Below, in pieces: positions 7,716-49,611 of a stretch of 64,000 nt of DNA. How positions within the stretch are numbered: position 1 is the stretch's first letter; each line of letters opens with the position of its first letter. The notes beneath the pieces are model-generated. The model was given only the letters and a program-made list of their open reading frames with translations. It had not been told where the DNA came from and searched no databases. Origin of the DNA: Pavona decussata (Eukaryota); assembly GCA_977016875.1 (NCBI GenBank), contig CDRNST010000143.1:3286001-3350000 (forward strand), given 5' to 3'. The position numbers and the translations under genes were made by a program.

Positions 7716-10700
7716 CTGTAATAGAAAGACGAACACAGTTATTTTACAGGTGATTTTGGACCTGGGCGGTTCTTGTTTTGTCACCTTTGATAAAATCATT
7801 TGAAACTACATAGGTTAATTGCGCGTTACGTCATGTCGGCCATGTTGGTGGTATGGAACAATAAGATTATTCCCCTCTGGGAGTTAACTGCCATTTATAT
7901 GCAAACTATGTGAGCAAATTTCCTTTTGTTTTTACCACCAACATGGCGGCAATGCAATCCACCTATTAGATTACTCAAATTAGAATCAAATTTAGTACAA
8001 TTTTGACAACGAAAACGCTTACACCTTTTAAGCAACGAGAGTTGCAATGTAGTGTTCCAGGAAATGTTTTTAATAATGACAGGAGCCCGGGTAATGGAAT
8101 CCTGATAATGATAATGACTCACAATTACAATGAAGATGAAATGATGGTGATGATAATGATGGTTGTGGAGGTGGTGATGATGATGAGAACGGTGATAATG
8201 GGTATGGGGGTGACAATGACGATGATGACGATAATGATGATGATGGGCATGATNNNNNNNNNNNNNNNNNNNNNNNNNNNNNNNNNNNNNNNNNNNNNNN
8301 NNNNNNNNNNNNNNNNNNNNNNNNNNNNNNNNNNNNNNNNNNNNNNNNNNNNNNNNNNNNNNNNNNNNNNNNNNNNNNNNNNNNNNNNNNNNNNNNNNNN
8401 NNNNNNNNNNNNNNNNNNNNNNNNNNNNNNNNNNNNNNNNNNNNNNNNNNNNNNNNNNNNNNNNNNNNNNNNNNNNNNNNNNNNNNNNNNNNNNNNNNNN
8501 NNNNNNNNNNNNNNNNNNNNNNNGAGGATGTTGGTGGTGACGGTGACGGTTATCGTGATGTTAATGAAAATGATGGCTGTCGTCATAAACAGCCGATTAA
8601 TGAATGTGACTCTTTCGATCTGGTTTGCATTCTCGTGTTCTCTTGTATTCCTCACCATATTGATGATCCATAACTCTTCAACGGAAACAGCTGAAAACGG
8701 TGCACAACTTTCTGGCGGCACTTCGCACAATACCAGTTCTTAAATATGAGACCAAAGCCATATCCATCATTCCCTTGGCTTGGTTTGTATTCCATCAGCG
8801 TTAATTCCCTATAGGGCCAACTGTCAAACATCACCCAAATGCACATGGTCATTTGTGAGAGCCGTGCAGGCACTGTAGTGATTTTAGCCTGGTCACGACT
8901 AATTAATTGTGACGAAAGGTGAACATCATAACTATGTTGAGCTGAAAAAGAGGGAAAATGGTGCAATAAACTAAAAGTCAACATTTTTTTTTAAGCTCAG
9001 GGAATTGTGTATCAAGTGAGGGAAATTCTAAAGTTTACTTCAAAATCAGTTTAAAGCGAGGAAATTTCACTGTTGAGTAGCCACTAGGTTTGGGAAAGGG
9101 TTTCTCTTTGGCAAAGGTAAAGTTTCAAAGTTGCCGCATTTACGAAGGAATTGGTTTCTGTGACGTCATCGCTGGCTTTATTGGCGAGTTATTTGACTTC
9201 TGTGGTCAGTGAAAGCTAGTTTCTGGTCAGTGATTAAATGAGGTTCGATTTTATCACCCGAGCTCGATTCGATTGCAATCGTGCTCCAGTGAAGACTATA
9301 GATAATCATTAGAGTTGTTTTCAATTAAGTGACGAAAGTAATTTTGCGTTTGCTTTGGTTTTGCTTTACTGCGCTCTGTGATTGGTTAAAAAAGTTCGTG
9401 CCACTATCTCAACCAATGATAAGCCAAACCCTCAAAACAATAGTGTTTTGCTTGAGCGCGCTTAACGCCGTTTACTTGGATTTCCTTGGAATTCTGATTT
9501 GCTTATTGTGCTGTTTATGTCTGCTGTGATTGGCCAGAGTAGTTACTTTGGTCTGGGTGTTGGAAACTTAATCGAAAACCGCTTTGTGTTCGTTTGTAAA
9601 TGAACCCGAAAGACACGAGAAAGTGTACAAGAGGAAAGGTACAAGAAATTCTAGGCAGTATTTCCTAAATTTCTCAAACTTTATCCAATCCCTCACTCAC
9701 TGTTGTTTGTCCAATTGTCAGACCACAGTTTTTGGTCAGAACATGTGTTTGTTATTTTTCACACAACATGCTTTGTCAAGTTTATGAATGATTTTATACA
9801 AGACACAATCAGAAATGTTTATTGACATCTTACGACATTCCTGTGTGTTGCACGCCTCTGTTTCTTCAGCAGGTCCCAGGCCGCTACAGTCCTTTCCAGC
9901 TCCAGCCGGCGGGGGACTGGTACAAGTTCTTGTTCGTGTTTTCACTCCTCCTTCACAAGAAGCACTGCATACAGAAAACGCCGACCATTGTGAGTAACCG
10001 CCATTCACCGCTATGAGGTAGAAAAAAACGGGGTTTTTTTATAGATCCTTCTTTTGTTGTTAAATGTCAAGGTCTGGCTGCCTGGGCCAGTTGTTTTAAG
10101 ACCGATCAAGCTAATTCTGGGTTAACGTGAACTTTATTTCGAGTTTAATCAATAAAGATTCCTCCAAAAGATTTTTGGCCCTCAGTTTCGACTTATACAT
10201 TTCTCTACCATTAGCTAAAAAATAACCCTCTAATTTAAAAACATTTTCTACGAACGAGATGAAAACCTCGGTAAACTTTTGGTCGTGGATTAGAATTAAT
10301 TTGCTTTCGAACAACCGGACTAGGGACACTTGAAGACCGAAATATGGTAGGGGTATTTATATCTGATCCATCTTCGTTAGTTCAGTTGGAAAGGAACTTA
10401 GCATCTCCCGCCCAGTGGTCCTCCTCAGTGCAAGAAATCAACGTGTTGATTGTCAACAAGCATTTTTTCAGATGTTACCATTGACGAAAGAGAACGCTTC
10501 CTAAACTACTTGTTGCCCTGTAATTTATATCCTGTGTAACTAAGCAGGAAAACGGCTTTTTTTTTTCCTTTGGGCTACCCTGTATAATTTTGGCGTCATT
10601 CTGCGTTGATTACTTAGAGTGGCACACATGCACTTTGAAAGGTTTTGTGCTTTTAAGAGAACCTGTCATGATCAGTGCATGCGCGAACTGTGAATATCAG

Positions 10701-24099: not shown

Positions 24100-24177
24100 C
24101 ATGAACTGTTTTTCGTCAACAGCATTTTTAAATTTACTTACATCAATTTAATATATTCTCAACTGAAATCCAAAGAA

Positions 24178-25442
24178 AGAAAGGCTTTACAGAAAACCAA
24201 GAATTTCCAAACAAATGGAGATAATTAAAGATGAATGACATTTTACTAACTCAAACGTTTTTATTCCAAAAAGGCACGGTAAATTTGGAAAGCTTTGCAT
24301 AACAATCTTACCTGTTAACATAACAATAGAACCTCTTCTGTTTTGCTTAGCACTGGATGATGATACTAGTCAGAATACCTCGGGGAATTAAGACTGGACA
24401 AATCTTCTAGCTTCCGTTTATACTAAGTAAAGTAATCAGTGACTGGATACCAAAAGAAATGTAAATACTCTCTGTTAGGTGGCATGACACCTTAATGGAG
24501 AAAGTTTACTGAACGGTTAAACTTGGTTACTTAGTTTCTTCCTAAGGGAACCAAGAAAAGATTTCAATTAAAAAAAGGCCGAATGAATAAGAAACGTCCT
24601 CGTTTTATTTTTGCAAAAAAATAATCTGAGGTCTGATCTGCTTGGTATTATGAGGGATGAGTCACAGTTTCACGCAGAACAACTCTATCGTCCTGTAAAT
24701 TTCTTTTAACTGTTACTTGTTCGTCTGTTTTTTGTTTGTACTGACCAAACTGGTGCCCATTGACCTGACATTTAAATGTCACCTTTGCAGGTATTGAAAC
24801 AAAGTGAACGTTTTTATGTTTTTTCATAATAGGAAACTAAACCCAAAAGCTGAGCACAAAATTGAAATATAACTTTCTTCTTTGACACGACGGCATTTTG
24901 TTTGTTATCCCCGTAGCGTCTTATTCGGTCCAGTTTCTTGTTTAACTTGCCGGTTATATGTTTACTCCAAAGTCAGAAAGGCTTTACAGAAAACCAAGAA
25001 TTTCCAAACAAATGGAGATAATTAAAGATGAATGACATTTTACTAACTCAAACGTTTTTATTCCAAAAAGGCACGGTAAATTTGGAAAGCTTTGCATAAC
25101 AATCTTACCTGTTAACATAACAATAGAACCTCTTCTGTTTTGCTTAGCACTGGATGATGATACTAGTCAGAATACCTCGGGGAATTAAGACTGGACAAAT
25201 CTTCTAGCTTCCGTTTATACTAAGTAAAGTAATCAGTGACTGGATACCAAAAGAAATGTAAATACTCTCTGTTAGGTGGCATGACACCTTAATGGAGATG
25301 TTTTTTCATAATATGAAACTAAACCCAAAAGCTGAGCACAAAATTGAAATATAACTTTCTTCTTTGACACGACGGCATTTTGTTTGTTATCCCCGTAGCG
25401 TCTTATTCGGTCCAGTTTCTTGTTTAACTTGCCGGTTATATG
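24178..25442. repeat. Tandem duplication upstream of gene A; second copy lacks about 315 bp
   Basis: 24178-24501 matches 24975-25298; 24817-24960 matches 25299-25442. Confidence 0.9.
24312..24535 (-). promoter_or_regulatory. Putative promoter and non-coding first exon of gene A
   Basis: Minus strand: forkhead-type TATTTAC (24461-67), TATAAA (24417-22), donor CAG|GTAAG at 24312; matching acceptor just before the ATG (23273); homologous block upstream of gene B. Confidence 0.55.
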
Positions 25443-28238
25443 ATTACTCGCAGTTACTAAAGCAAATAAAAACAAGCAAACTGTTTCCCATACAATAGAT
25501 GATTAAATGTGAAATTACTGAAATAGTTCATGATACTTAAATATTACTTTAGTGGATCTGTTCGATGTCAAAATAGTGATTATAGACCTAATGTCACATT
25601 AGAACACTCATTTTCTTGATACCATCGGGAGAATTTACTGATGGACTTGTCCTGGGAAAGCCAAACGTCAATGAATGCCTCTGAAATCGAAGAATCATTT
25701 AATCGTTCATTTCTGCTTTCAATCAGATATTTTGCTTTTAAAATTTTGTTTTTAATACTTCTCCACTATCTAAATTTAGGAGCCAAACCCATGTCATTAC
25801 AAGAGCGCTTGCTCGAACCGTAGAAAACAAGGTTCTACTAGAGGTTGGCCTTGTCGAGGAGATAATTGACTGTGTACCGAAGCTTGTCTTCGTCTGAGCT
25901 CCAAACAAAGCTGCCATGACGCGAAGTTCGAATCGTTTACTGACGAATATTCCCTCAGCACGAACCTTTCGCTAGGTTGAGAAAATGCGATTTTCCAAAA
26001 ATATATAATGGTGATTTGCTCTCTAATGTTTTTGATTGATTTCTCTCGTTATTTTAGTTAACGCGGGCGATTTCTTCCGCCCGGCGCCTTCACGTTTCCC
26101 ACCTCCTCTTTTCATGTCCCTTTGGAGACACGATCCATACTGGTTTTAACCAAATATGATAAAATAATGTCATAGGATGAACAAAAGCATACTCAGAAAC
26201 GGGTTTTCAGTAAAAAATTGAAAATCCAATAAAACACTGGGAAGATTGAAGCGGACTTCTAGATGTATTCGAGGCGTACCTTTGACTTCAAGCTGACCGA
26301 AAACTAGTGTCCAGGTCAGCGCGTCACAAAGCTGACTGTGTTCCTTTAGATGCGCATAACTTTTGGTTTAGAACTTTCGGGTCTAAGTTCTGAACACAAC
26401 GTCAATTTTCATTCTTGTTATTGTTCTAGTTTACTTGATAAAAGTCTTTGTTAAAGTTAGGAATCTTGTATTTTAAATTCTAGAAAAATCACCGAAGAAT
26501 TATTGTCCAATCGTTATGAAGTGTCGGGGCGGACATGTTGGAATAAAGTGTGTTGGTTTTGAGTCTGTGGCGGTTACTGCACTACATATACATATAATGG
26601 TTTGGCATTGCTATTCAGTAGCTTCAATCAGTTGGCAGTCAATATGGTTGAGTGAGAATCCTCAATGCCTGTTGGACAGTTAGTAGACTACAAAACCGGA
26701 TTCCGGTTATGAACCGACAGCGAACTGGGATCGACCATGTGATTCTGGCGCTTCGGCTCATGGTTGAAACAAGGTTGAACACCTTATGATGTTTATACAA
26801 CAGAAACTCATTTTGAATTTAACAGCCATGAACCTCGGGTCGTTTTCGTCCTATATCCTGATGTCCACTATACTAACGTGGGCAAGCTGACAAAAGTGGT
26901 AATTTTTAACTTATTTCATAGAGTTAGCCTTGAAAACACCTGACCAGTTTTCAAATCGGTGCTTTAAGGCCCCAAATAACCTGCGTTTAGCACCAAAACA
27001 CTACACTGTTCCCTGCCTAAATGGAACTCTATTCTCTCAGTTCTTCACTGAAAACAAGAGGCTATTACCAGCTTAAACTCGGGCCATATTTGACCGCGTG
27101 GTGCGTAAGTCTACGATCTTTTAGCAGTGATAACCTCCAGCATCGCTAACTCCACCAAATCGATAAATACAGAGATATAGTGAGGCAATAAGTAACCACC
27201 AGATACAATTCCATTACTTGCAGTCAGAATGAAATCAAGGGGAAAACAACATTTGTTAAGTAGAGTACCTTGTGCTTCAATTCCCGGGCTTAAATCCTTA
27301 CGTTTTTACCTTTGATTTGGAGACAGAAACCATTTGTTCATTGATTATGTTTCAATACTAACCGTGAGTCAGATATGTATCTGTGTGACCCCGGGTCATG
27401 ATGACGCTAAAAGATCGCAATTTCCGGTATGATCGTCGTGAAGGCCACATTCAAGTGTTCTACCCTTTCAACCAAATCTTGAACAAGAATTTCTGTTGTA
27501 GGCTACATCGGGACTATGATCATGAAGAATACTATTTCATGTAAACATCATAACGTGTCCAACCTTGTTTTGGAGTACCCATTCTAGAAACAACCTTTAA
27601 CTCATTTATCTATCATCGCTGATCATCGCTAAGTATAGGGGAATCTTTGCTGTCGTCATTATTCGCATTTTCCCTCATTGCCAAAAATCAAACAACAGGC
27701 TATAAACAAATGGACACCACAAACTAATAAAAATGTCACTGGTGGTAGTTGCTGGAAGTAGTGCTGTGAAATGTTGAATAGTCTCAGAGAAATTAGCCTT
27801 CAACAAGTGTGAAACTTTCAAAAAATGCGTGGATGGCTGGCCCAGCCATACATTCTTTTTAAAATGTTAAGTAAAAAAAAAACTATTCAATTTTCCGAAA
27901 ATTCCAAGTTTGCCAAGCTCTTTCAATTTGTGGAGACCATTTATTGGTAGCTAATTGTATCCTTTATGTTAATACAGGCTAGTGAGGCTAGGCTTGTAAA
28001 CAAAAATCTGCTTTTCAAGAGCACGCAGTGAACAAGGTCTTAAAGACTATTTATAATTTCTTTTTCTTTTTTTTTTATTAAAAGCAGAGTCATCGCTCGT
28101 TTCTGTCAAATTACAGTCATTTTATTTCACTGATGTACTAATTAAGAACATAATTAACCTTGCTTAGCTTCGTTGACAGTTCCTCATTGAAAGCTAATAC
28201 TTTATTGTAGAATTCAATTTCTGATGAAATTAATACTG

Positions 28239-28650
28239 TCATGGTTGGCATTTCGTTGGGCTGATTAAAGAACCCTCCGCATTGGATTTCACAGACTCGT
28301 AGAAATCATCCCAGATCACTACCGGACTGAACTTTCTGAACCCTTCGCATGTTTCCCTGACCTTGCCTATCTCTCCAATTGTAAGGACTCTGTCCCATAA
28401 AGCGAACCCGCTAATTTGCACCTCTTCACTCGTGCGAGAAACCGATTGGTCCACGTGATTGGCTACACCCATTAAGGTCATATATTCGCCTCCACTCCTC
28501 TCGCTTGCTCGACAGTGATAACGTCGTAGATTTTTGGGTCTTTTTATCGGGATTCCATTTCTGTAGAACCTTGCATTATTGTTATTTGCTCTCCACGATA
28601 CACATAAATGACGCCACCTGTTTAATTGAAGTCCACGAATTTCCACTTTG
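28239..28650 (-). CDS. Gene B exon 7 (pentraxin domain 2, C-half, terminal)
   Basis: WRHLCVSW...[12 protein letters not shown]...stop. Confidence 0.9.
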
Positions 28651-31600
28651 CTGTAAGAGAATGATGAAGCCAAATGTTATAAGGTCAGTGGGAGGAGGAG
28701 ACCTGGGACGAGTTGCCTAAAACTTAACGGCGGGCGTAAATGCTATCATCAGACGTTAAAATACTGAATGTGACTGGGCTGAAGGTCTGGCGTTAGCAGT
28801 TACGCCCGACGTTAAGTTTTATGCAACTCGTGCCTGGAGCGAAATTTACGAAGGCCGCCTGCAGTATATCTATCCTGAACAATAGGGAGCTTAAGCAGTG
28901 ACGACGGCAACGGCAACGAAAACGTCACCTGGAACTATAACTTTATTTCATTTGTGCTACTTCGCGATTATTTCAACTCATTCAACTTCTACAGAAATGG
29001 CGAACTATCCAGGAACCAAATTGGTTGGAGTGGCGTTCAAGTTAAGAAAGAAAATGAAAAATTCACCGTCGTGTGCTCACGTTTTCCAAAAAACCTACAA
29101 TTTGGTCATTTCACGTTGTTGTTTTGCAGAGGACAGCAAAGAAATGTACCAAAATGTAAGACGCACATACAGAGCGATTATTTTTTGCTCGTTAAACCTA
29201 TTGTTTTGTGGCGTTGTCGTTGTCGTCGCTGTCGTCGTTGCGGAGTAAGGGCTTGAAAGCTGGTGCAGACTGCTTTCAAGCCAGTGTGCTTGTTGAAACT
29301 TTAGGGGCTGATCGCCAAGCATGCGCAGTAGCCTGCTACATAACTCAGTGTTGGGCCTAACTTTCGATAGGTGACTGCATGTTACGTTTCAAGAGCACAG
29401 GGGTGGGAAACGGAGGGTTATGACACTTTTAACTCAGTTGAATTTCTTTTGTTTCCTAGGCTATAGTGAAAGGCGGCATAGTTTGGGCCAAGATCTCCAG
29501 TCAGATGCCTGGCCTGAATAATGGATGGGCTTATGCTGACACAAAGCCTAGGTGCATGGCTCAGTGAAGGTGGGTGACTGGCAGCTGTCCGTCAAAAGTA
29601 CAGTGGGGAGAAGGGGAGTGATACTGGCTACAGGTGAAGTTTGGGCCTTTTACAGTTTGAGGGCAGGTGCATTTTTGCAAATCCAACCTCTTCATATGAG
29701 CCCGTTGACCGCGGGCTCGCCCGGTTAGCGGGGCGAATTTGGTCTTTTTTTTTTTTTCATTTGCCTATGGAAAGTTTCATCCCGGTTACAGAGACGAAAA
29801 AGATGCCGGATTCTTTGCTTTGGCCTTCACGTCCTTTGAACGTCTGTCGAAATCATACGGCAACTGTAAAGCACCCACAGCTCTGAACATAAATGCATCG
29901 TGTACATAAGGTTTTGCCAACCCCACTTACAGTTCTTGGTACTGAATTTGTTTATCGGCGTCGAAATCAAGACTTTTATAGGCCATTTTTGGGAAGTCCT
30001 GGTAACGGGCTGGAGTTTATATATGGAAAATATCGTCAGTCCGTTTACAGAGATCTCGGTTGCAAATCCAAACATCTCAGTAACGAAACTAACCGCCTTC
30101 TCATCAACACATGGAAAGTTTTACAAAGGAAATGCAGATGAGACGAGATCTTGGAAACCGGGCTTATATGAAGAGACCATGAGCTATACATGTAGCTTGA
30201 GCATAAGCACTGCCTTCAGTGATGAATTCGCAAAACAAATCAATGAAATCATGGACGATGATGTCATAATATCGATATGGAAATTGATATCGAAAAGAAT
30301 GTCAGATATCGGTAAATTGCTTACTCATATCAGATCGATTTGAAAAACTGGCATCGGCCAACCCTCAGTAGACATAACGTAAGTATCCATCCACAATCAT
30401 CACGATTACCTGAAGCAATCCAGGGACGGGATTTCACACGGCTTAATCACCATATACATGTATTCCTTACCACTTTTCGTTCTCGGGCACCCCAGGCTTC
30501 ATCCAGAAGATCTTAAAAATGTATCTGTACATAGCTTTTTTCTTCAATTTACCAGGAAAGGTAAGTCTGAGACCAAAACCGTTGTTCTGCACACTTGATT
30601 TGTATTCCACGAGCGTAAAATCCGTAAATTGCCCACTAGTTAACTTCACCCAAATGCACATGGTCATTTCTGAGAGCCGTTCAGGGACTTTAATGGTCTT
30701 AGCCTGGTCACGTTGAATCAATTGGTTGTTAAGTCGAACGTCAAAAGTAATAGCTGAAGAGAGAAAAAAAAAGACATATGGTACACAGCTTAAGGACGGT
30801 GTCTCCTTTTGCTATTGCGCATACATTCTGCGCATCTGCGAGAAAGTCGAGTTTCTATTGGCGGTGCCTGTTAAAACAGAGATATTTTTGCGCGGCTTAT
30901 AACTTCGCGGGAAATGCAGATCTTGGCACGGGTTATTGGAATCCGAAAAGAAGGGTAGGTAGGGGTAAGCGCGCATTTTCCGTCTCACAACCCTTGTTTG
31001 TATATAACTCTGTGGGACGTTAAAGAACCCACTCACTGTTCGCAAAGAGTAGGGGACGTAGTTCCCGGTGTTGTGGTCTGTTCTTTGTGTGTATACTCTC
31101 ATGGTGGGCGCATTTCATCATCACGTCATGTTAAAATGCGCGTTACAAGTTACAAGTATTCGGTATTCAGTATTCGGATATTTAAGCTGGAATTTGAAAA
31201 AAAAAATGCCCATTGTATTGTGTTTTGGCACTTTCTAGAATTATTGTTGCTTAATTATCTCAAAAATAAAATGCGCGGTTACCCGCCAATTTTCTTTTTG
31301 GGTTCCAATAGTCCTTGCTAAGATCTGCTTTTCCCACATAGTGATAAGCCGCGCAAAAATACTTCGGTAAACTAAAATAGAAATATCCTTAATGTTTGTT
31401 ATGTCATAGTTACGCGTGAAAATTAATGAATAGAGACAAGCATGAGCGATGAACAATAAGGCGTTTGATTGACAGTGAGGCACGAGATTCGACTTTGTAT
31501 CATGCATTACGACATACGACCGCCGACCGGTTGGCTCAGTTGGTAGAGCACCGGGCTCCCGTGCAGGAGGTCGCGGGTTCAAACCCCGGCCGGACCAACA

Positions 31601-37600: not shown

Positions 37601-38010
37601 AAACTTAAGACGTCTGTAGTTAGGGATTCAAAGCCGTCTTAAATTTTCGAAAATGTAAGATGGTTCTTTTTAACAGGCTATTATCTTGCTATGGTAGCCG
37701 ATTATGACCATAAGTTGTGCACCAATGACTAGGCATTTGCTTGATACCATTATTTTATATCAATTGATGAAGGGTGGTAGTACTGATCCATCAAAGTATA
37801 AGCGCTGGAAAGTGCTGGAAACCGGTGCCAGCCACCTTCATATCAAGTAAGTTAACGTGTAAAAGGAAGATGTAACGTACTATGTGTAAATATGGTTCAC
37901 CGGCCAGGACGCGAACCCTGGTCTCCTGCATTTAAGGACAGTGCCTACTTTTGCTATTGCGCATACGTTCTGCGCATCTCAAGATACTCGGGTTTCCTAT
38001 CGGTGGTGTC

Positions 38011-38048
<38 letters not shown>

Positions 38049-39581
38049 GCGGAGAAAGCAGAACTTAACAAGTGCTCTTGGTATTGAGGGTAACCATGCA
38101 TTTTTAAGAGACAATAAAACTTCAATTTGGAAAAAAAAAACAGCCATATATTGCTTTTTATTTTACGCCTTTTTAGAATTATTGTTGCTTAATTATGTCT
38201 AAAAATTGCGTAGTGACCCCCAATTTTCTTTTCGGATTCCAACAGCCCTTGCCAGCCGTTTTCCCGCACAGTCATAAACCGCGCAAAAATACTTCTGTTT
38301 TAGTAGGCACCGTCCTTAAAATGGGTTATTCCAGGAAGGGTTAGGGATAGGCTATTCCAAATCAATGTCTTCACTTCCATCCTCATCAATTACGCCAAAT
38401 TCTCTAAAAATGGACGCTTATTGGGCAAGAGGCACTTTAGCAATGGGATTGGTTATCAGTATTGGCGTACTTGTAATGAGCTTCTGAAGTTGGGCCTGTT
38501 TAGAAAGATGACGCTTTCAGAAAGAAATGTGCTTAATCAACTCATTATGCCCGCGGAAGGACCTTGAAAAGCGACGGACCATGAAACCGTAATCAAGAGA
38601 GTAATAAAGAAATGAAAATAAAATAAAAGAAGTGAGAAGAAACATAGGAAAGGAAAACTTGGAACAGAGATGTTGAGGTAGAGGGTAGGGAAAATGGCTA
38701 GGAATACTTTGAAGAGGATAAAAGGAATCTTATCAAATCACGACGTTAACGCCAACGAAAACGTCACTTAGAAATAAATATTCACGTCATTTGATTTACT
38801 TTGTGATTATTCCAATCCGTTCAGCTTGCACAATGCGAACGAATTATCCAGGAACATAATTTAAAAATTCACTGCTGTGTACCCACGTTCTCCTGAAAAC
38901 TTTGAATTTGATTAATACGCGCTACTGTCTTGCATAGGACGTTGAAGAAATGTACTTTTTTTAAACGGGCGTGCAGAACCACTGTTTACCTTATTAAACC
39001 GTTTGTGTTGCCCGTCGTTGTTGTGCGTGATAAGGTTCCTATCATTAAACTAGGTTAGTCACAGTAAGAATCTGAAGGCTTAAGGGAAGTGACAAGGCTT
39101 GACTAACTTCCAAAGTGCAATGCTTTGACATGAAATTTCCCTCTTGCAAAATAACCCCGATAAAAAATATTAGAATTGTCGACAACACTTACTTCTAGGG
39201 ACCTGACACTGGGAAGGCGTCCTTAGCACTGGTTTAAACGCGATATCTCCCCCGCATGCGTCGTTAAAGTCTCGCCAATGTACAAGAGGCTGTCCCATTC
39301 CTCCTCCGTTGCATTTTTTAGCTTCATTAATAATATGGGATTCGGCTAGCTCTCTGTTCCATAGATAAAAACCTGTCATTTCAACATCGGTTCCTTTTCT
39401 ATTTCCGCCTCCAAGTTGCAATGATTTTCCCGCGGGTAATGCTCCACCATCGCAGACTTGATAATCAAGCTGTATTCCATTCAGGTAATATCTTGTAATG
39501 CCTATTCCTCTGTCCCGTACAAAACAGACATGGTTCCAGTCTGGACTGTCCATAAGTCGCTCGACGTCAAATTCGCTAAAA

Positions 39582-39613
<32 letters not shown>

Positions 39614-42600
39614 AATGATGATGATGATGATGCCGATGGTAATCACCCTCATGATCATAATCCTACTTATAATCACAATTTTTTGTACTCTTCTTATCTC
39701 AGAGATGAAGTTCTAAGGTCAGCTTGATAGAAATGCGGGGAAGCTAAAGACCGAAATGTGATTGACTTTGTTGTCTAAGGGTGACCCGAAGAGAAAACCG
39801 AGAGTCTTATGGCAGCTTAGAATTTGGCTTTGAAAACAAACTCATTGACGAAGGATATTCACAAAATGGACCGAATGGAGTTAAAAAGCGAAGGTTATCT
39901 GGGAATCTGGTGGAGAGCGTGATGCACGTTGTCAGTGCGTGGAGGTAAAAGGTCATGCAATGATCACTGGTACCAACATTTCCCAAAGAGGGTTCTGAAT
40001 GATGTTGAAAAGTGTAACATCCTGTGGGTCGACCTTGACTTCTTTACAGCTAGAGAGATCGACCATCGGAGACCTGACATTGTGGTATTTTAATATCCCA
40101 CGTGAGTACTAGCTAGATGATCGATGTTGCAATCCGGCCCTAGTGACTACCACATCGCAAAGATTGGGTTGGAAATGCTTGCTAACTACTGAGTATTAGA
40201 AGTAGAGATCCCAAGAATGTGAGACGGTGTCTATCACCAATGTGAAAATAATCGCGTCCTAAAGTGATGACGTCGCAAAAACTAAATTTGGCAAATTATG
40301 CAATTGGATGAGATATTCGAAAAGAGTTTGATCAAAACTGCCCACTTGCCAAAAAATCAACATCTTATTGCAACTTATGTTCTCATGACTCCATGTAAAC
40401 CCCTCTTATTAAGCCTCGGTTCTAAACGAGAAGAACTGAGTAGCATTCAGCGAATGGTCAGGATGGTAACTGAGGCATGCGTATGCTTAGGTGTCCTTGA
40501 CATTGCCACCGTTTGTTTTCTTACAGCTTTAATCTACATGGAAATTGTAGCGGGCTTTTTGCGCTACCTTCGTCTCAGTGATGCTTTCTTTGTAGTGCCA
40601 CGTGCACAAGACGGCGTTAAAATGGCTTTTCGTGCAGCTTGCGCTCACCCTTGAGTCTGTTTGGCCACCCATTGCAACTCTGTGCATACAAGTGGGAATT
40701 TCCAAACTCGCAATGCCTTGAAACTAAACTGATACTTCAGGGAAGATTACTCAGAAAACTGTATACTGTAAATATTTTTTTTTACAAAGTTATACGGACA
40801 TATTTTTTATTTTGTTCATAGCTATCTTACTTATAGGAATCCTTCAACGTTATAGGACCCATCTCTTGTTTTCCTTTTCAAGTTGTAATTTTATGTAAAN
40901 NNNNNNNNNNNNNNNNNNNNNNNNNNNNNNNNNNNNNNNNNNNNNNNNNNNNNNNNNNNNNNNNNNNNNNNNNNNNNNNNNNNNNNNNNNNNNNNNNNNN
41001 NNNNNNNNNNNNNNNNNNNNNNNNNNNNNNNNNNNNNNNNNNNNNNNNNNNNNGTTGTTCGAAAGCCGATTAACGCTAATCTACGATTAAAAGTTAAGCG
41101 AGGTTTTCATTTAGCTTTTTAAAAGTGGTTTTAAAGCCTAAATGCAAGCTAAAGGTAAAGAAAAGTCTAAGTCAAAACTGCGGGGCAAAAATCTTTTCGA
41201 AGAATCTTTATTGACTAGTAATTAAACTTGAATCAAAGTTCACGTTAACCCAGGATTAGCTTAATCGGGCTTTAAAAAACTGAGCCCAGGAGATTGTGTC
41301 ATTTTAAGAAAAAAAAAAATTGGTGTTTGTTTACATGATTCCAGAATTCAGTCTTTCAATTGCTTCAGATGAACGTTTTTGTTGTATCCCCCTTCCCCGA
41401 GATCTGATTTTATGGCTTACTCTCTTTGGATATTTTTTACTTTAGAGAACGTATTAAGGGTTTCCTTGAGCAGAATAAATTCCTTCCAACTTAAAGATAT
41501 ATAAACAATAGCCGCCATTTGGCGCGAAAATATGCTCAAATATCTGAGCATATTTTTAAAGCCAAATGGAGGCTATTGTGGCTATTATCCTTCAAATATT
41601 TTTCGCAACATGTACCAACGAGTTTGAGTATTTGAACATTTCGTTTAAGAACAGTTTACCGTCAAAAACGTTTAGAGCGTATGTTGTTTTCTGATACTGC
41701 TCTATCGACCAGCAGGTTTATCTCTCCTTCTGTCACAAAAGCAAACGTTCCGCCATCTTGACATTAACTGTTCAATTGTAAGCAAGACGCGCCTTGCAGT
41801 TTTTGAAATTGGGGAATATTCACGATGATATTCCCCAGTTTTAGCTGGGGTATATTCGGTTACGAAAATATTTGATGGATTATAACGGTGAATTTAAATG
41901 TAAATGATTATTCCGACGAATTAAGAGTAATGCTGGACAGCGCTTTCCAGCAGAAATTGAAACAATCGCCAATTTTGTACTTCTGATCATTAATTTGTTT
42001 GGCCCCTTAACCTTGAAAGTTTGCGTTACGAGAAGCGGCCTTACCAGTTTTTGTTCCAAAGACCGATGCCAAAGACAAGTTTTTTATATCCATTTACGGT
42101 CAAGGAGAAGCTCTCTCTTGTTAGGATATTAGGTTGGTTGCTATAAGCAATCAGGAAAAGCATCAGGGCGGGGTGTCCTATAAGTTGTCCTTGAAACCTT
42201 AGCCACATACACATAGTCATTCCATTTTTATCCGGGACATCTTGGAGTTTGAATGGCGCCATTCGTGTAGACGAGGAGAGAGTGATATCAAAAGGACCAA
42301 TCGCTGCAACGATAGATTAAAAACATTGTTAGCATCCCTACTGATGAAAGTATCTTGAGCCCTTAATTTTGTACTTTAGTCGCGTTGTTGTTGAACTTGA
42401 CCAGAGGATAAATAATGGGACGAATTAGAGTTTTAAATTGACTGTCATCAAAGGAAAGTAATTACGCTGGCCAATCACAACACGTGAACAACACAATGAA
42501 CCACTATTGCATGTTTGACTGATGCAAAGCGCGGATAAACGCCCGAAAGCAATTCACGGTTGGTTTTGGATGTACTTTTCAATGATTAATAATAATAATT

Positions 42601-44244
42601 ATATAATAATAATTACTTAATAATTAATTAAGAAGTTTGTGCGAGTTTTGTCAACCATCCAGAGAGCGTAGTAAAGCAAAAACAAAGTAAACGCGAGTTT
42701 ACTTTCGATAGTCAGTTGAAAACTGCTTTATGTTTGTCTGCCCACTAAGTACAACTTATAGTGGCTAACTTTATCCAGCAGTGGACAGATGTGTGAAGCA
42801 AGCACTTCTCTCAGTTTTAATAGTGAAGGCTTTTGGAACGTGTTTTCGTTGTTGTCAAACCTATTTGTCAGACTTCATAAGTTTTTCCACGTAGCTACAA
42901 ATATCAGTGCTCTCCAGAACTTTTACTTACATCCTTCTGAATTGATATTATTCCGTTAAACCCTTTTCCCGCGGACGTTTGCAAAAACTAAAAGTCAAAA
43001 AGATAACTACTCGGAAAACGTAAAATATAGGTGTAGACAAGAAACAGAAAAGTATCGTAGTATTTCGGTTCTAAACTTAATTTTATAACAACTGTCAAAA
43101 CTCCTGTGTGCTGATTGGCTCTTAGTTATTGTCTATAAGAGTGCAGACAATTATGATGACGTCACATGTAACGCACGGGTTTTCCCAACGGAAAATAAAG
43201 CCAATTCCACTCGTACTTTTTCCATGTTATTGCAAAAAAAAAACAAAAACACACAAAACAAATAGACGGTGGCTTTCTATGGTCTATCATCTTATAGCCC
43301 ACAAAATGTTCAAAATTTGGCAGTGAAACCGCTCGTTTGCGGCTCGTGATTCCACCTCAGTTTTGAACATTTTATAACGACATTTTATGGTCTATCAGAC
43401 GATAGACCACAGAAAACTGCCGTCGATTTATTTAATAGAGGACCACCTTCCCAGTGGCCCTGATGAAGAACTAATAAGCTATCAAAAGTTACAAAAATGT
43501 CGGCCTCAATCAACGCAGGAGCCCATCTCAATGTTGGTTTCAAGGGATGCCAAAGAACTTGTATTGTTTTAATTTAACGGTAACATTTTTGTAATATTTA
43601 ACTTCGTGACTGTTAGCTGGTGGATATTGGTTATTTTATTTATTAAGTAAATGTCAAGAATTTAGTGATTTATCACTCACGTTTAGTTCGCCGATTACAT
43701 GCCTTTTCTCCGCGCAGGTAAGATATTGAAGGAATATACAAAGGAAGACTTTCATCGTATGAAAAACCTGAAAAGCATAGATTAGTTAGAGCATGGTTTC
43801 CAGTTTAAGCGTTGGGACCTGGTGTAAAAACATATTTTGAAAGTTTAACTTTAAGGGTAATAACCGTATAGACGACAGGTAGGAAACTGAAAACAAGTCG
43901 AACCTTCAGAAGCAGACCTTTGACCTTCCGATACCGCCCAAAATATATAACCATAGGGTTGTGCTGACGTGACGCAAAACTCGAACCCCGGAGCAAACAC
44001 TTATGCAAGAAAAGTCATTACATCACTCCACTGCACCTTGGCGTTGCATTGTTAGGAGAAGTGAGGTATATTATACGCGAAGATGACGGTAGCTCATTGA
44101 AGAGTGCAGATATTGATAGGAAGTTTTTACAGTTGAGATGTTGCCGTCAGGAACAAAATATTAAAGCGTACCACTACATTTGATAAACTTACAGTGCGGA
44201 AGAAATGCCATCAGCAGGGCAGAGACCAATCCAAGGGTTGTCAT
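28239..44244 (-). CDS. Gene B: paralogous secreted pentraxin/LamG-TSP1-pentraxin/LamG protein, 7 coding exons, 549 aa
   Basis: Exons 44193-44244, 43681-43767, 42045-42303, 39193-39575, 35015-35188, 30471-30753, 28239-28650; all GT-AG; phases identical to gene A; 1650 nt open. Signal peptide [20 protein letters not shown]. Confidence 0.88.
28883..29240. mobile_element. Dispersed MITE-like repeat (GACGACGGCAACG family)
   Basis: Inverted GACGACGGCAAC / GTTGTCGTCGCTGTCGTC ends; related copies at about 3655-3800, 6750-7045, 38740-39040. Confidence 0.65.
30471..30753 (-). CDS. Gene B exon 6 (pentraxin domain 2, N-half)
   Basis: QLIQRDQAK...MTMCIWV; phase 1-2. Confidence 0.88.
31522..31995 (+). 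mobile_element. tRNA-derived SINE
   Basis: A box TGGCTCAGTTGG, B box GGTTCAAACC, about 400-bp body, (CAT)n tail; partial body copy at about 30981-31123. Confidence 0.8.
32910..34148. mobile_element. TTAA-targeting MITE (Kolobok-like), TIR AGGGAACCTCCACT
   Basis: TTAA at 32906-09 and 34149-52; 13/14 TIR match. Confidence 0.8.
32958..33776. mobile_element. Tc1/mariner (pogo/Tigger-like) MITE
   Basis: TA on both sides; TIR CAGTCRAACCTCCC; many subterminal TAAGCGACCAC repeats. Confidence 0.88.
35015..35188 (-). CDS. Gene B exon 5 (TSP1 repeat)
   Basis: [29 protein letters not shown]...CNTQEC; phase 1-1. Confidence 0.93.
35430..37512. mobile_element. GGACGGTGCC-family MITE interrupted by a Penelope-like element
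   Basis: TTAA-GGACGGTGCCTA ... TAGGCACCGTCC-CTAA. Confidence 0.82.
35656..37323 (+). mobile_element. 5'-truncated Penelope-like retroelement (RT plus GIY-YIG), pseudogenised
   Basis: [37 protein letters not shown] (RT); [20 protein letters not shown] (GIY-YIG); 12-bp TSD AAATACATGCTT at 35644-55 and 37324-35. Confidence 0.92.
37936..38315. mobile_element. Intact GGAC(A/G)GTGCC-family MITE (Kolobok-like)
   Basis: TTAA on both sides; TIR GGACRGTGCCTACT; further partial copies at about 11695-12690, 30794-31380, 34230-34575. Confidence 0.88.
39193..39575 (-). CDS. Gene B exon 4 (pentraxin domain 1, C-half)
   Basis: EFDVERL...WNHVCFVR...FYLWNREL; phase 2-1. Confidence 0.9.
39700..40230 (+). mobile_element. 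Remnant of a restriction-like-endonuclease non-LTR retrotransposon (R4/NeSL-type 3' end)
   Basis: Degraded HVVSA, HWYQH, ILW...[12 protein letters not shown] motifs. Confidence 0.55.
40900..41053. other. Assembly gap
   Basis: Run of N. Confidence 1.
42045..42303 (-). CDS. Gene B exon 3 (pentraxin domain 1, N-half)
   Basis: IGPFDITL...MTMCMWLR...LVFGIG; phase 1-2. Confidence 0.85.
43681..43767 (-). CDS. Gene B exon 2
   Basis: [29 protein letters not shown]; phase 1-1. Confidence 0.85.
44193..44244 (-). CDS. Gene B exon 1 (signal peptide)
   Basis: [17 protein letters not shown] then GTAAGT. Confidence 0.85.
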
Positions 44245-44939
44245 TCTCCCTGTCTGGCAAAAAGAGAAGCGCAAAATCAACGTAAATAACTCGGAAATAA
44301 TATTGACTATCCGACTGAAGACATACGCATGGAAAGCACGTTTTGGATGGTCCACTCAACTCAATGACGGAACGCGTTCTGAGTGGTTTCGACCGCTAGA
44401 GTGTTCGCTCTTATCCTTCTAGCAGATAAGTAACATTATAAATCATATAACTAAATGTAAATATATCAGATATATAAATCATATAACTAGTAGTAATCAA
44501 AGATTAGGGAGTGCGTTCGATGATGTCGATCCCAGGCTCTCTCGCCTTTGCCAAGTTGGTGATGACGTCATCCACCCCTGCAAAATCTGCGGGGAATGCC
44601 AGATAGGCGTCCCAAGAACCATTCATTCATTCATTCATTCATTGATTTAATCAACATCCCATACAATAATCTTGGCTCCAATCTGTATTAGGAGTACGTC
44701 CTTTTTACGTCGAACGCAATTAAAAACTGGATCATTCGATAACGCAGTTCAGAGTTTCGACTGAGTTATAATACTGGACAACATATATCAGCATTACACC
44801 ATACACGGCCGTCAAATAGTCCTCTGATCTTTCTCGTAAAATGAAATTAGTAAGGTCTAGCCATATTTCTTGGTTTTTTAATAAGAAAAATTATTTCACT
44901 GGCTGTTGTCGGATATAGGATAATCATAGTTGGACCTAA

Positions 44940-45240
44940 CACCTACCTAACAGATATGCTAATTGAATATACACCTACTAGAATACTCCACTCCGTTAAG
45001 AAAGATCTCTTTGTCGTGCCTAAGTACAATCTTAAAACCTATGGAAAGCGAGCTTTTTCTGTAATCGCCCCAGCGCTCTGGAATAATTTGCTTGTCTGTG
45101 ATTGTATTAAAACTTCAGAGTCCTTAAGTAATTTTAAAACTCGTGTTTAAACCCTTTTATTTAAACGTTCTTCCTAAATTTAATACGTTGTCATTTGATT
45201 TCATTGATTGTTATATTATTTTTCTTATTGTATCCTTGCA
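44940..45240 (+). mobile_element. L2/CR1-group LINE 3' fragment
   Basis: VPKYNLKTYGKRAFSVIAPALWNNL...FK, typical ORF2 C-terminus. Confidence 0.75.
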
Positions 45241-45471
45241 TAGTTAGAGCCCAGTCTCGACACTTTAGTCCTTTTGGTACATTTCAGTCCTTGAAATTAG
45301 ACTATTTAGGCCCTAATTTAGTGGAGCCAAATTAAACCTCAATATAGCTCCCGCCGAATCGGCCCCGATTTGGGGACCAAAACATTTTTTGAATTAACAG
45401 TATACAACGCAACTGTTTCTATTAATTCAGATTACCCTTATTTTGAACTAATCCATTTTGTATCTACTTAC

Positions 45472-45685
45472 CACTGAATCCGCTTTTGTTTCCCTTGACA
45501 ATGGATGGAGATAATGATATTATCTTTGAACAGACTGGAAAACTCGTTCAGCCGCTACTGACTTAAAAAGTAAAGGAATCACAGTGACTTGTACCAAAAG
45601 AAATGTAAATACTAATACTATATGTTGGGTGGCATAACACCTTAGGGGGAGGAACGTGCTGAAGCGGTAACCTTGATTACTTACT
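45472..45685 (-). promoter_or_regulatory. Putative promoter and non-coding first exon of gene B
   Basis: Homologous to 24312-24535 (CAGTGACT.GTACCAAAAGAAATGTAAATA...GGTGGCAT.ACACCTTA); minus-strand donor GTG|GTAAGT at 45472. Confidence 0.5.
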
Positions 45686-46573
45686 TTCATATCGTATATT
45701 TAAACGTTTTTGTTTCAACGTTTACCGACAATAAAGCACAACTGGGGAAGCCAAAGACTACCATTTCATGCTGTTTTAAAAAGCGTGAAGCGAAGATTTT
45801 AGATCGTCAACGAATCTTAATCTAGATTTTAAGGGTATGTTTTCCATTCCGTTGTGTATACCAGTCGAAAATAGGAAAAGTGCCAATCGAGGTTTGTGGT
45901 CAGAGTGAGAGAGACCGTACAGATGTAAGAAAAAAAAATGATAATGAGGAAACTTTTAGGAAAGCGCTGCAGACGTGTTGAAAAAATGTGCCTTCTTTTT
46001 CAATGTATCAGAAATGTAATTTTCCCTTTTTCGTGCAGCAAAATTTTCTTTAAACATTATGTAAAACGCATTTGTTTGGATTAATTCAGAATACCGTTGT
46101 TGAGAACAAATGCCTTTTGTATCTAGTTCATACTACTACCCCAAGCTGTAGCGACTTTTCGAGTCACTATACTAGTTTCTACTTACTTTAAAACAATGAA
46201 ATCTGTGCTGACTAGATTCCTCTCCTGGAAGAGTAAATTTATCCGACAACAAAGTTTTTGTTTTGCTACAAGTAACGTTGTCTTGGTTACCCCAAGCTGT
46301 AGCGACTTTCAGAGTCACTATACTTACTTAAAAAGAATGAGATCTCTGCTGTCTACATTCCTCTCATGGAAGAGTAAACTTATCCGACGATGAAGTTCTT
46401 GTTTTGCTACAAGTAACGTTGTCTTGGTTTGCACTCGAACCAAGACGAACAGGTGGCCATTCACTTTCTCCAAACAACTAAGCTTATTTACTTTATTTTA
46501 GCTTATTTTATTTATTAGCTTTGCCATTGTTACTTATGTACCGGCAACATTTCATAAACCCGTTCATATTTTA

Positions 46574-47077
46574 CGGCAGAACCCCGGTAACTCGAACTCG
46601 GATAACTCGAACTCCCCCGCTAACTCGAACTGAGTCTCAATTCCCTTGGATTTGACCCAACTTTTCAGTCATTTTTACTCGGTTAACTCGAGCTCCGATA
46701 ACTCGAAAACCCCGCTAACTCGAACTAAATTTCGTTTCCCTTCATCAAAATGTACCCTGATAACTCGAATTCCTGGTTCTTATAACTGGTCATAACTCGC
46801 CACGGATGCCCATTGAGATATCCCATTTGCTTTTCTTATCGTGTGATGGAATTCTAACACTAGATCAAAGACTGGATCAATTTGATTTTAATTAGTGCAA
46901 CGAACAGATACAAAATGTATTAGTTTCTCGTTAAATAAGTTTAATTTGCACTACCAAAGTGCTGAAAATCAATAAACTACTAATTACTAACCTGGAAAAT
47001 TGAATATTTTAATCGACCCCGATAACTCGAACAGTTTTTCGTTTCCCTTTAGAGTTCGAGTTACCGGGGTTCTACTG
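46574..47077. mobile_element. Tc1/mariner (pogo/Tigger-like) MITE
   Basis: TA on both sides; TIR AGAACCCCGGTAACTCGAACTC; repeated TAACTCGAA motifs. Confidence 0.88.
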
Positions 47078-47335
47078 TATATGATATTAAAGAGATTTTA
47101 AATTACGTTTACGGAAAACGGCAGAAATGACCACGTGATCACGTTTTTCCTACACTTTCCACTCGCTATTTTCAGTTTCTCAGTAAAATTGAGTAGTTTT
47201 GCGTTACCGAGTAAAACCTCCGTTTCTGTCTACAGAAGTTTGAGCCTCCCCAGATTTAATTATATCGATTTGTAAATATTAACAAAATTTAGAAAAAATA
47301 AAGGAAATGAAAAACAATTTCTTAAACAGGTAACG

Positions 47336-49028
47336 ATTTTTAAGGATGAATAACTTAAGACTCGTTAAATATAAAAATTTGCATGACTTACACGTAATGA
47401 TAATCACCTTGCCCACTGAATCCTTTTCTGATTCCCTTGACAGTGCAGGGGCGTAGCCAGGGGAGGGTTCCAGGGGTTCCGGAACCCCCCGTCTCCTATA
47501 TTTGACAGTGATTTTATCCCAGCTAGAATGTAATGGACTCTCGATTCCTGAAATTCTTCGTTTTGTTCTATGCTTACAATAAGTGCAGTGAACGTCATTG
47601 TGGTATCCATTTTTCGTTTCACTTGCATTTTCGGAGACATGAGCAGAGCTGGGATTCCTTTCCTGAAACCCCTGAGTGTAAAACTTCAGAAGAGAGATCT
47701 TGATGTCTACGAGGCATACACTAACAGTAATAATGTCACGGACGATCTCCAGGACATCCGAGACAACATCGAAGACATCTGGACCGAGTGGTTTGATCTG
47801 GCGGTTCGGCTACCGCGGCAAATGTAGGTGTTGTGCCTTCCATCCCACGCCGAACCAATCAGCAGCAGCATCCTGACAATGTACAAGCCCAGACACCATC
47901 TGATTACTATAAGAGGGCAGTTGCTATTCCCCTTCTAGACCATCTACAATCCGAGATGAAAACATACTTCAATCCTACTAATGACGCTGTCTTGTCCAGC
48001 CTCTTTCATCTTCTTCCTGAGCTGGTAGCCGTCGGAGACAAAAATCCTGACATTGAAGCAGCGCTGGAGTTTTATGAGAACGACCTTCCTTCTCCTCTTG
48101 TGGTTGATGTTGAGCTCCTGCGATGGAAGAGAAAGTGGTGTAGTTCTGAGGATGCCGACCTTCCCACCAGTGCAGTTCATCGAGAGTAAGTTCTTTCCTA
48201 ACATCCACACCTTGATCCCCATTTTGTGCACATTGCCGATAACGTCAGCTGAATGTGAGAGCTCATTCAGTACACAAAGAAGGTTAAAAACATACCTGAG
48301 GTCGACCATGTCAAGCGAGCGAGAGTCTGGGTTGGCATTGATGAACATCAATTACCACCGAGACATAAATATCGAGGAAGTGATAAACATGTTCGCTCAA
48401 CGGCAACCAAGGCGTCTTCTGTTTGCGTAGTGTAAACGCCAAAGTCTTGTACGTACGTAATGTAAGGATTTTAGACCAACCGTTTTCGTTGGAACCAATT
48501 TGGAACCCCCCCCTCCTAAAAATCCTGGCTACGCCCCTGCAGTGGATGGTGATATTAGTGTTATCTTAGAACAGAATGCACAAATCGTGAAGCTTCTGCT
48601 AATTTTAAAGAATCGCAGTGACTTGTACCAAAAGAAAAGTAAATATTGTCTGCTGGGTGGCATTACACCTTAAGGCGTAATGCCACCCAGCAGACAATAT
48701 TTACATTTCTTTTGGTACAAGTCACCGCGATTCTTTTACTTTTTAAATCAGCAGAAGCTTCACGATTTGTGCATTCTGTTCTAAGATAACACCAATATCA
48801 CCATCCACTGTCAAGGGAATCAAAATAGGATTCGGTGAGCAAGGTGATTATCATGACGTGTAAGTCATGCCAAATTTATTTAACGAGTCTTAAGTTATTC
48901 ATCCTTAAAAATTATTACTGGCATGGTGTGAATCTAAGTAATCAAGGTTATCAGTTCAGCAAGCTTCCCCCCTTAAGGGGAGACGCTTGCTGAACTGATT
49001 ACCTTGATTACTTAGATTCACACCATGC
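47336..49028. repeat. Two adjacent spacer-less palindromes centred on CCTTAAGG (48668-75 and 48971-78)
   Basis: Left arm 47336-47445 plus 48545-48671 pairs with 48672-48912 (about 240 bp); 48921-48974 pairs with 48975-49028. Confidence 0.92.
47446..48539 (+). mobile_element. Internally deleted hAT DNA transposon with 5-bp TSD (hAT5-like)
   Basis: 16-bp perfect TIR CAGGGGCGTAGCCAGG; TSD CAGTG at 47441-45 and 48540-44; frameshifted transposase C-terminus FPNI..L..ILCTLPITSAECESSFSTQRRLKTYLRSTM..ER..GLALM (hAT dimerisation domain). Confidence 0.93.
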
Positions 49029-49543
49029 ATAAATTCAAGGGTTTTGTCTCTGCCCCATTACCAATTTAGCCCAGTTTCATGGGTCATTTCCCGAACAGTG
49101 GCTAGTAATCGAGCCTAACGTAGTTGCTGATTAAAAAAACAGTAGGCCTTCACCTTTTCTAAGCTCTATTTTCACTGGATCCAGATAATCTGCGGCTCTG
49201 CAGCTCCATTGTCAATTGAAAGCAAAAACTAAACACTTGTTATTGATTAAAATTAAATTCGCGCAGTTCGCTGCGCACAAATTGTTCAATCTTTCAAGGA
49301 CAGGTTGACAACTCATTTATTTCGACAAACCTTTGACCTTTATTAGAATTGTAATTAGCTATTAGGAATCATCTATAAATATTTTATTCATAGGTTATTT
49401 CCTAAAGAATGAAGTTGATCATTGTGTTTTAGCCATTGACCTTGTAATTCCATTGTAATTTTAAATTATATTTATTTAGGCTATCTATATTGTAAAGCGC
49501 GCGAGAGCATCTGTTTAGGATTCGCGCGCTATATAAATAATAA

Positions 49544-49544
<1 letters not shown>

Positions 49545-49611
<67 letters not shown>
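49545..49611. repeat. (TTA)n microsatellite, probable tail of an L2-like 3' end
   Basis: Follows TTGTAAAGCGC...GCGCTATATAAAT. Confidence 0.85.

Follow-up and report, generated by a model that had tools for sequence, protein, structure and literature searches.

A double spacerless palindrome and its direct tandem allele in a pentraxin-like gene cluster of Pavona decussata: probable inversion between two palindromic octamers

Three states of one locus are in hand: a plain site in a related species, a direct tandem duplication in one haplotype of Pavona decussata and a double palindrome in the other haplotype of the same animal. The double palindrome lies in a stretch of 64,000 nucleotides (contig CDRNST010000143.1, positions 3,286,001 to 3,350,000 of the forward strand), which is called the window throughout. 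We consider it likely that an old tandem duplication of a putative promoter/exon-1 module was later followed by an in-place inversion between two native palindromic octamers. The original prediction, made from the letters of the window, held with respect to the geometry of the structure, its reality, its confinement to this locus and its ancestral state, while the cause that it proposed is disfavored and is not needed.

The double palindrome exists as it had been described, namely as X-TTAA-X'-Y'-TTAA-Y with two adjacent palindromes devoid of spacers, and this geometry was recovered both by reading of the sequence and by a repeat finder. On the plus strand X (47330-47445 and 48540-48671) is followed by X' (48672-48918), the dinucleotide tg, Y' (48921-48974) and Y (48975-49028). 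At both centres the inverted copy directly abuts its template (spacers of 0 nt), and each centre is the octamer CCTTAAGG, hereafter P, whose copies at 48668 and 48971 are its sole occurrences in the 64-kb window. The arms of the palindromes measure 247 and 54 bp. Their complementarity amounts to 95% and 94% close to the centres and to 88-90% farther out. The following features were assigned:

24279-24535, plus strand: module A, a paralogous plain X-CCTTAATG-Y, situated inside its own local tandem duplication
45472-45685, plus strand: module B, a paralogous plain X-CCTTAGGG-Y, upstream of a minus-strand pentraxin/LamG-like gene
47330-47445, plus strand: outer part of X, with an inverted match to 48806-48918, aligning with modules A and B and with the ortholog of the related species
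47446-48539, plus strand: hAT-type non-autonomous transposon of 1094 bp that splits X, delimited by family matches ending at these coordinates, by PF05699 and by a target duplication
48540-48667, plus strand: inner part of X, reaching as far as the first octamer (repeat finder, alignment)
48668-48675, no strand: P1, CCTTAAGG, where the X/X' palindrome has its centre and the invertible segment its left end (shared joints of 8 letters; orientation switch in the other haplotype)
48676-48918, plus strand: X', which repeats X in inverted form and lacks the transposon; it is the second repeat unit of the tandem allele, where it is oriented like X (alignment)
48919-48920, no strand: J, junction of the X' and Y' copies, equivalent to the head-to-tail junction of the tandem duplication, its position being ambiguous by 0-3 bp (alignment)
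48921-48970, plus strand: Y', the inverted copy of Y, whose reverse complement is 98% identical to Y of the related species (alignment)
48971-48978, no strand: P2, CCTTAAGG, where the Y'/Y palindrome has its centre and the invertible segment its right end (joints; switch in the other haplotype)
48979-49028, plus strand: Y, about 50 bp, on the gene strand upstream of the exon-1-like segment; presumably the proximal promoter
48668-48978, no strand: segment present in both orientations within the species, palindromic in the reference and direct tandem in the other haplotype (contig L033; Logan joints 48667>48978 and 48668>48979)

Such structures are rare. When the window and 20 random 10-kb pieces of the genome (264 kb altogether) were scanned for nearly spacerless palindromes (spacer of at most 6 nt, arms of at least 25 nt), these two were the only ones found. 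Single strands comprising the two centres are predicted to fold with -55 and -66 kcal/mol (z about -20). A dispersed element or fold-back MITE, in the original prediction the finding that would have spoken against X'Y' as a scar, was ruled out, since all matches of 48540-49028, and thus of X and Y, in the 602-Mb genome fall inside this window and its gene cluster.

The plain modules X-CCTTA(A/G)-Y that had been noticed upstream of genes A and B are indeed present (modules A and B of the list), and an additional copy of X occurs at 25076-25298. When the outer part of X is read on the minus strand, which is the gene strand, an exon-1-like segment appears to end there at a GT donor recognisable in the sequence, and some 50 nt of an intron would follow. 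The reverse complement of X ends with a GTAAGT-type donor in modules A and B as well as at the double palindrome. Judged by these sequence features, X looks like a non-coding first exon together with the start of intron 1 and Y like the approximately 50 bp immediately upstream, and the module would thus correspond to a promoter and first exon. Almost no sampled words of the locus were found in RNA runs of the species, which is not proof of silence. Pentraxin/LamG-like exons reside on the minus strand at 28242-28676 (PF00354) and 39170-39676 (a weak match to Laminin_G_3), and the genome contains at least 150 pentraxin-domain matches. The local tandem duplication around module A consists of the units 24169-24967 and 24966-25449, which match each other at 99.4% (24169-24501 versus 24966-25298) and 98.7% (24816-24967 versus 25298-25449). 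The second unit is devoid of 314 bp (24502-24815, including Y), the deletion beginning 6-7 bp past the TTAA. Elsewhere in the window we noticed an intronless open reading frame of 370 amino acids (4066-5178, minus strand) matching rhodopsin-family GPCRs (PF00001, E 8e-34), a 2.67-kb unit in two tandem copies that are 97.7% identical (50301-52974 and 52971-55639) and runs of N at 8254-8523 and 40900-41053. Immediately to the left of X a very high-copy repeat (46570-47245; summed Logan contig depths of 10^4-10^5) contains internal direct and inverted sub-repeats of the motif ACCCCGNTAACTCGAAC.

Further contigs carrying the locus were retrieved by a search with one pentraxin-like exon and then by way of contigs encoding its relatives. 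Two long-read metagenome assemblies of the ENA agreed with window positions 45000-49552 at 100%, both palindromes and the transposon included. The contigs in question are ctg101998 of ERZ25073751 (L029; 30.8x) and ctg131021 of ERZ25073805 (L030; 64.9x), assemblies that are separate from that of the window's genome and may derive from the same animal. This agreement over 4.5 kb corroborated the earlier view that the arrangement is not an artefact, which had been based on the differences between the arms and on the transposon in one of them. A scan of metagenome contigs for the X-P junction yielded 8 contigs, none of which was homologous to the locus; these were chance matches.

A second contig of ERZ25073805 (ctg133279, referred to as L033; 1.3 Mb, 69.7x), found via the second protein-cluster member of the exon, disclosed the other arrangement. 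It is colinear with the window over approximately 38.0-48.7 kb, with 1.2-3.7% mismatches in the compared segments (about 97% identity). Because of its equal coverage, this degree of identity and the lack of a second copy of the locus in the window's genome, L033 was regarded as the allelic haplotype (hap2). Window positions 48668-48978 lie on the opposite strand in L033 (98.7% identity), whereas both flanks, X with the transposon to the left and Y to the right, are colinear. After flipping of this piece in the reference, 307 of 311 positions were identical and the alignment ran through both octamers without any gap. The order in hap2 is accordingly X-P-Y-J-X-P-Y, that of a direct tandem duplication repeating every 303 bp, in which the copies stand head to tail and one junction is novel. 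Compared with each other, the two alleles display an exact reverse complement between colinear flanks, inverted repeats abutting both breakpoints and junctions at which bases were neither gained nor lost; 8 letters are common to the joints, and the octamer is self-complementary. Beyond the segment, divergence of the haplotypes is strong (38002-49198; 1.2-3.7% mismatch depending on the segment, and many indels), and to the right of about 49198 they no longer align, which suggests a further structural difference.

Short-read evidence came from Logan contigs, for which the listing of joints covered non-reference joints only. A 206-nt contig of run X4 reads X-P-rc(Y')-rc(J)-rc(X' outer end), where rc denotes the reverse complement. 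In run X1 the joint rc(X')-P-Y was present at about half the local depth and the X contig halted directly after P1, as expected of a heterozygote. Both conspecific samples carry C at 48642, the hap2 base, where the palindromic haplotype has A; a second SNP (A/G) that tells the haplotypes apart lies at 48981. Run X4 is probably homozygous for the tandem form, a genotype to be read with the restriction that Logan contigs cannot show absence. Ligation artefacts of Hi-C were dismissed as a source of the short-read junctions, because fill-in would duplicate the overhang while the junctions are seamless and match the long-read contig. The sample comprises about three individuals with four to five haplotypes. 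Run X6 (organism B, about 98% identical) had a coverage of approximately 2.7x, too thin for determining the arrangement. Thus, both arrangements exist as alleles.

The outgroup has the plain state. A contig of a related species (ERZ26692669; L031) is 86-92% identical and colinear in the order left flank-X-CCTTAAGG-Y-right flank, and it contains neither the transposon nor the X'Y' duplication nor a TTAA element at the site. Run X9 (organism C) yielded a Logan contig of 539 nt with the same plain order, flank-X-CCTTAAGG-Y-flank, likewise free of the transposon and the duplication. The octamer is therefore native to the site, and the module is single copy in both. It had been expected that the orthologous site would exhibit either plain X-TTAA-Y or a TTAA element; the first was encountered in both contigs, the second in none.

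The element interrupting X allowed us to order the events. Its ends, CAGGGG...CCCCTG (CAGGGGCGTAGC...GCTACGCCCCTG), are terminal inverted repeats, it encodes a remnant of a hAT dimerisation domain (PF05699, E 1.3e-12), and its family, with members about 1.1 kb long, is represented in the genome by at least 77 matches of 85-95% identity. By inverted ends, dimerisation domain and multiple copies it belongs to the hAT elements. The canonical target-site duplication of hAT elements is 8 bp. Here it consists of 5 bp (cagtg, at 47441-47445 and 48540-48544), as it does in most of 11 other copies inspected (among loci L010-L020), which departs from the canonical rule and fits a 5-bp subgroup of hAT elements. 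The transposon resides in both haplotypes, L033 included, and is absent from X' and from the related species. Since X' lacks it, the insertion postdates the duplication. An exact look-up of the open reading frame within this transposon copy, undertaken to find more individuals, returned the same two contigs only. Alternative transposition by the hAT element was ruled out as the origin of the rearrangement, because the breakpoints lie at the octamers rather than at the ends of the element.

Comparison of the arms, with the related species and the paralogous modules as outgroups, gave a similar order. Of 227 aligned sites, 14 (6.2%) distinguish X from X', seven differences being private to each, plus indels; the two share three clearly derived substitutions. 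Three derived changes are present in the 54 nt of Y, and rc(Y') departs hardly at all from Y of the related species. The two arrangements diverge by only about 1.3% in the flipped piece and the right flank. Considering an arm divergence of about 6%, the duplication is therefore old and the flip younger: the duplication postdates the separation of the species, yet it is much older than the split between the arrangements. As the transposon is common to both haplotypes and missing from X', the duplication came first, then the insertion of the transposon, and the arrangements separated last. At 48975-48990, beside P2, Y of the reference carries derived changes (GGGGAGACGC), the related species and rc(Y') agree on GGGGGGAAGC, and hap2 reads GGGGGGACGC and is thus intermediate.

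The following course of events would account for these data. After separation from the related species, a 303-bp piece, consisting of Y (about 50 bp from upstream), the native octamer and X (about 245 bp, exon-1-like and running into the start of the intron), would have been duplicated head to tail, resulting in X-P-Y-J-X-P-Y. A hAT-type element would then have inserted into the outer copy of X. Later, in one haplotype lineage, the segment from P to P would have been inverted in place, giving X-P-X'-J'-Y'-P-Y. Since P is self-complementary, its two copies could serve as inverted repeats of 8 bp and the flip would be scarless. By bringing the repeat halves head to head with their partners, it would have generated two spacerless palindromes simultaneously. 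With regard to enzymology, we infer that the flip was most likely an inter-strand template switch with return during replication, or an equivalent microhomology-mediated repair, with 8-bp pairing at both jumps: a nascent strand ending in P1 would pair with the other strand at P2, copy back to P1 and then regain its original template at P2.

The sequence between the octamers bears on this directly. Reverse-complemented, X'Y' reads Y-J-X, a stretch found uninterrupted only in the tandem allele, whereas a plain site would give Y'X'. Hence, one inversion between the two copies of CCTTAAGG suffices. According to the four-point template-switch model, the insert is the reverse complement of one contiguous stretch (PMC5453318); under this rule the palindrome is reached from the tandem form in one event, while three switches are needed from the plain site. 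That the tandem form came first is quite probable, judging by parsimony, allele counts and palindrome stability, the outgroup having neither form. Tandem duplications are common, with another case in this family of modules at locus A, more samples displayed tandem junctions than palindromic ones (with the Logan list confined to non-reference joints), and arms diverged by 6% around intact centres fit a young palindrome made from old repeats; among the diverged arms a mismatch is present adjacent to P1. Several considerations weigh against duplication followed by inversion. The sample of haplotypes is small, and the same inversion in the reverse direction would convert an original double fold-back into a tandem duplication. 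In addition, 303 bp is about ten times the size of documented template-switch microinversions, 8 bp is little microhomology, and the TTAA within the octamers might indicate an enzyme that cuts at TTAA. Recombination between the long arms was rejected, because crossing-over between adjacent inverted arms leaves the structure unchanged and the tandem form contains no inverted repeats longer than 8 bp.

The original prediction had taken the structure for the scar of a break at a TTAA. A plain site would have been broken, both ends folded back or capped by hairpins, copied for 247 and 54 nt and joined, and the tandem allele would have emerged later by inversion at the octamers. This is unlikely, even though it predicts the exact geometry with one TTAA per centre, agrees with the plain outgroup and would explain the microhomology of 0-1 bp at the X'/Y' junction, as in end joining. 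Fold-back junctions at short inverted repeats are also documented (PMC10766183, PMC3834830). But a rare event with three junctions would take the place of a common tandem duplication, and no step would be saved, as the tandem allele still requires the same inversion from P to P. Furthermore, a perfect spacerless palindrome of 247 bp would have to have retained its centre while its arms drifted by 6%, a single switch and return cannot make X'Y' from the plain site, and the higher number of samples with tandem junctions, counted among non-reference joints, argues in the same direction. A simpler contiguous source for X'Y' is available in Y-J-X of the tandem allele. With the identical 311-bp piece merely flipped in L033, where it forms a plain tandem duplication, folding back of two broken ends is disfavored and unneeded.

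If the duplication came first, the flip could also have been brought about by a nuclease specific for TTAA (a transposase of the piggyBac family, for example, or a domesticated relative of one), which cut both TTAA sites and thereby released the 303-bp fragment for religation in the opposite direction. TTAA is found in both boundaries, the joints are seamless, self-complementary overhangs of 4 nt allow ligation in either orientation, and putative TTAA-targeting elements were noted in the window at the first reading of the sequence. On the other hand, sequence reading revealed no piggyBac-like terminal inverted repeats beside the TTAAs of the segment, which is moreover unique in the genome, and boundary identity spans the full 8-bp palindrome, so that microhomology explains the joints equally well. 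Besides, piggyBac transposase works on its own ends (PMC7351741). We therefore hold this route to be rather improbable. There is very little probability that the flip is recurrent or enzyme-driven at CCTTAAGG, for instance by a TTAA-cutting, piggyBac-derived nuclease, and that the segment acts as an invertible switch. In such a case the tandem orientation would provide two intact upstream-P-exon-1 units on the gene strand and the palindromic orientation none, and the latter would set exon-1 sense and antisense head to head as a possible source of hairpin RNA. Least credible of all, and in our view practically negligible, is an assembly artefact by which one arrangement would be absent from the animal: palindromes are difficult to sequence and one read set is possibly common to the assemblies, but the window's genome and the two ENA long-read assemblies agree exactly in the palindromic form, the tandem form is carried by a 1.3-Mb contig whose coverage is the same and, together with a matching SNP, by short-read contigs from two samples, and the arms are diverged with a transposon in one of them.

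Duplication followed by inversion connects the locus with known mutations. Microinversions between human and chimpanzee are typically bounded by inverted repeats abutting the breakpoints, and template switching and microhomology-mediated break-induced replication have been discussed as their mechanisms (PMC8755829). Like these and other template-switch mutations (PMC5453318), our alleles are exact reverse complements with inverted repeats abutting both breakpoints, neither gain nor loss of bases occurred, and one switch and return is sufficient. They differ in size (303 bp as against 17-33 nt in the 'definite' human-chimpanzee set), in the flanking repeat, which is one self-complementary octamer present twice only through the prior tandem duplication, and in the product, a pair of spacerless palindromes whose arms measure 247 and 54 bp. 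ODIRA (PMC10766183) and end-capping of sister chromatids (PMC3834830) likewise lead to a spacerless inverted junction on a short pre-existing palindrome. These processes make the inverted copy and raise the copy number in one step, usually over kilobases or more, whereas our tandem allele already contains two copies and orientation alone differs. With excision of piggyBac the locus shares a TTAA at each junction centre; that excision is seamless, and hairpins form on the ends of the transposon and not on the flanks (PMC7351741). The original prediction had envisaged excision of a TTAA element, but both haplotypes and the outgroup are free of such an element at the site, and the inverted segment itself is no mobile element. 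The geometry x-x'-y'-y around an excision site is also that of footprints left by hairpin-forming transposases and of P-nucleotides in V(D)J recombination; these comprise a few nucleotides and retain the target-site duplication. Here, in contrast, the arms extend over 247 and 54 bp and no target is duplicated.

The locus is thus best read as an unusually large natural example of a known mutation class, the microinversion flanked by inverted repeats, and it would widen the span of sizes over which very short inverted repeats are known to bound inversions. Its two alleles may be used to study the stability of palindromes at a heterozygous locus. On this reading, long spacerless palindromes in an animal genome can arise without fold-back repair: a duplicated unit with a short self-complementary motif and one scarless inversion would yield two palindromes at once, which is a caution against taking palindromes for scars of breaks or footprints of transposons.
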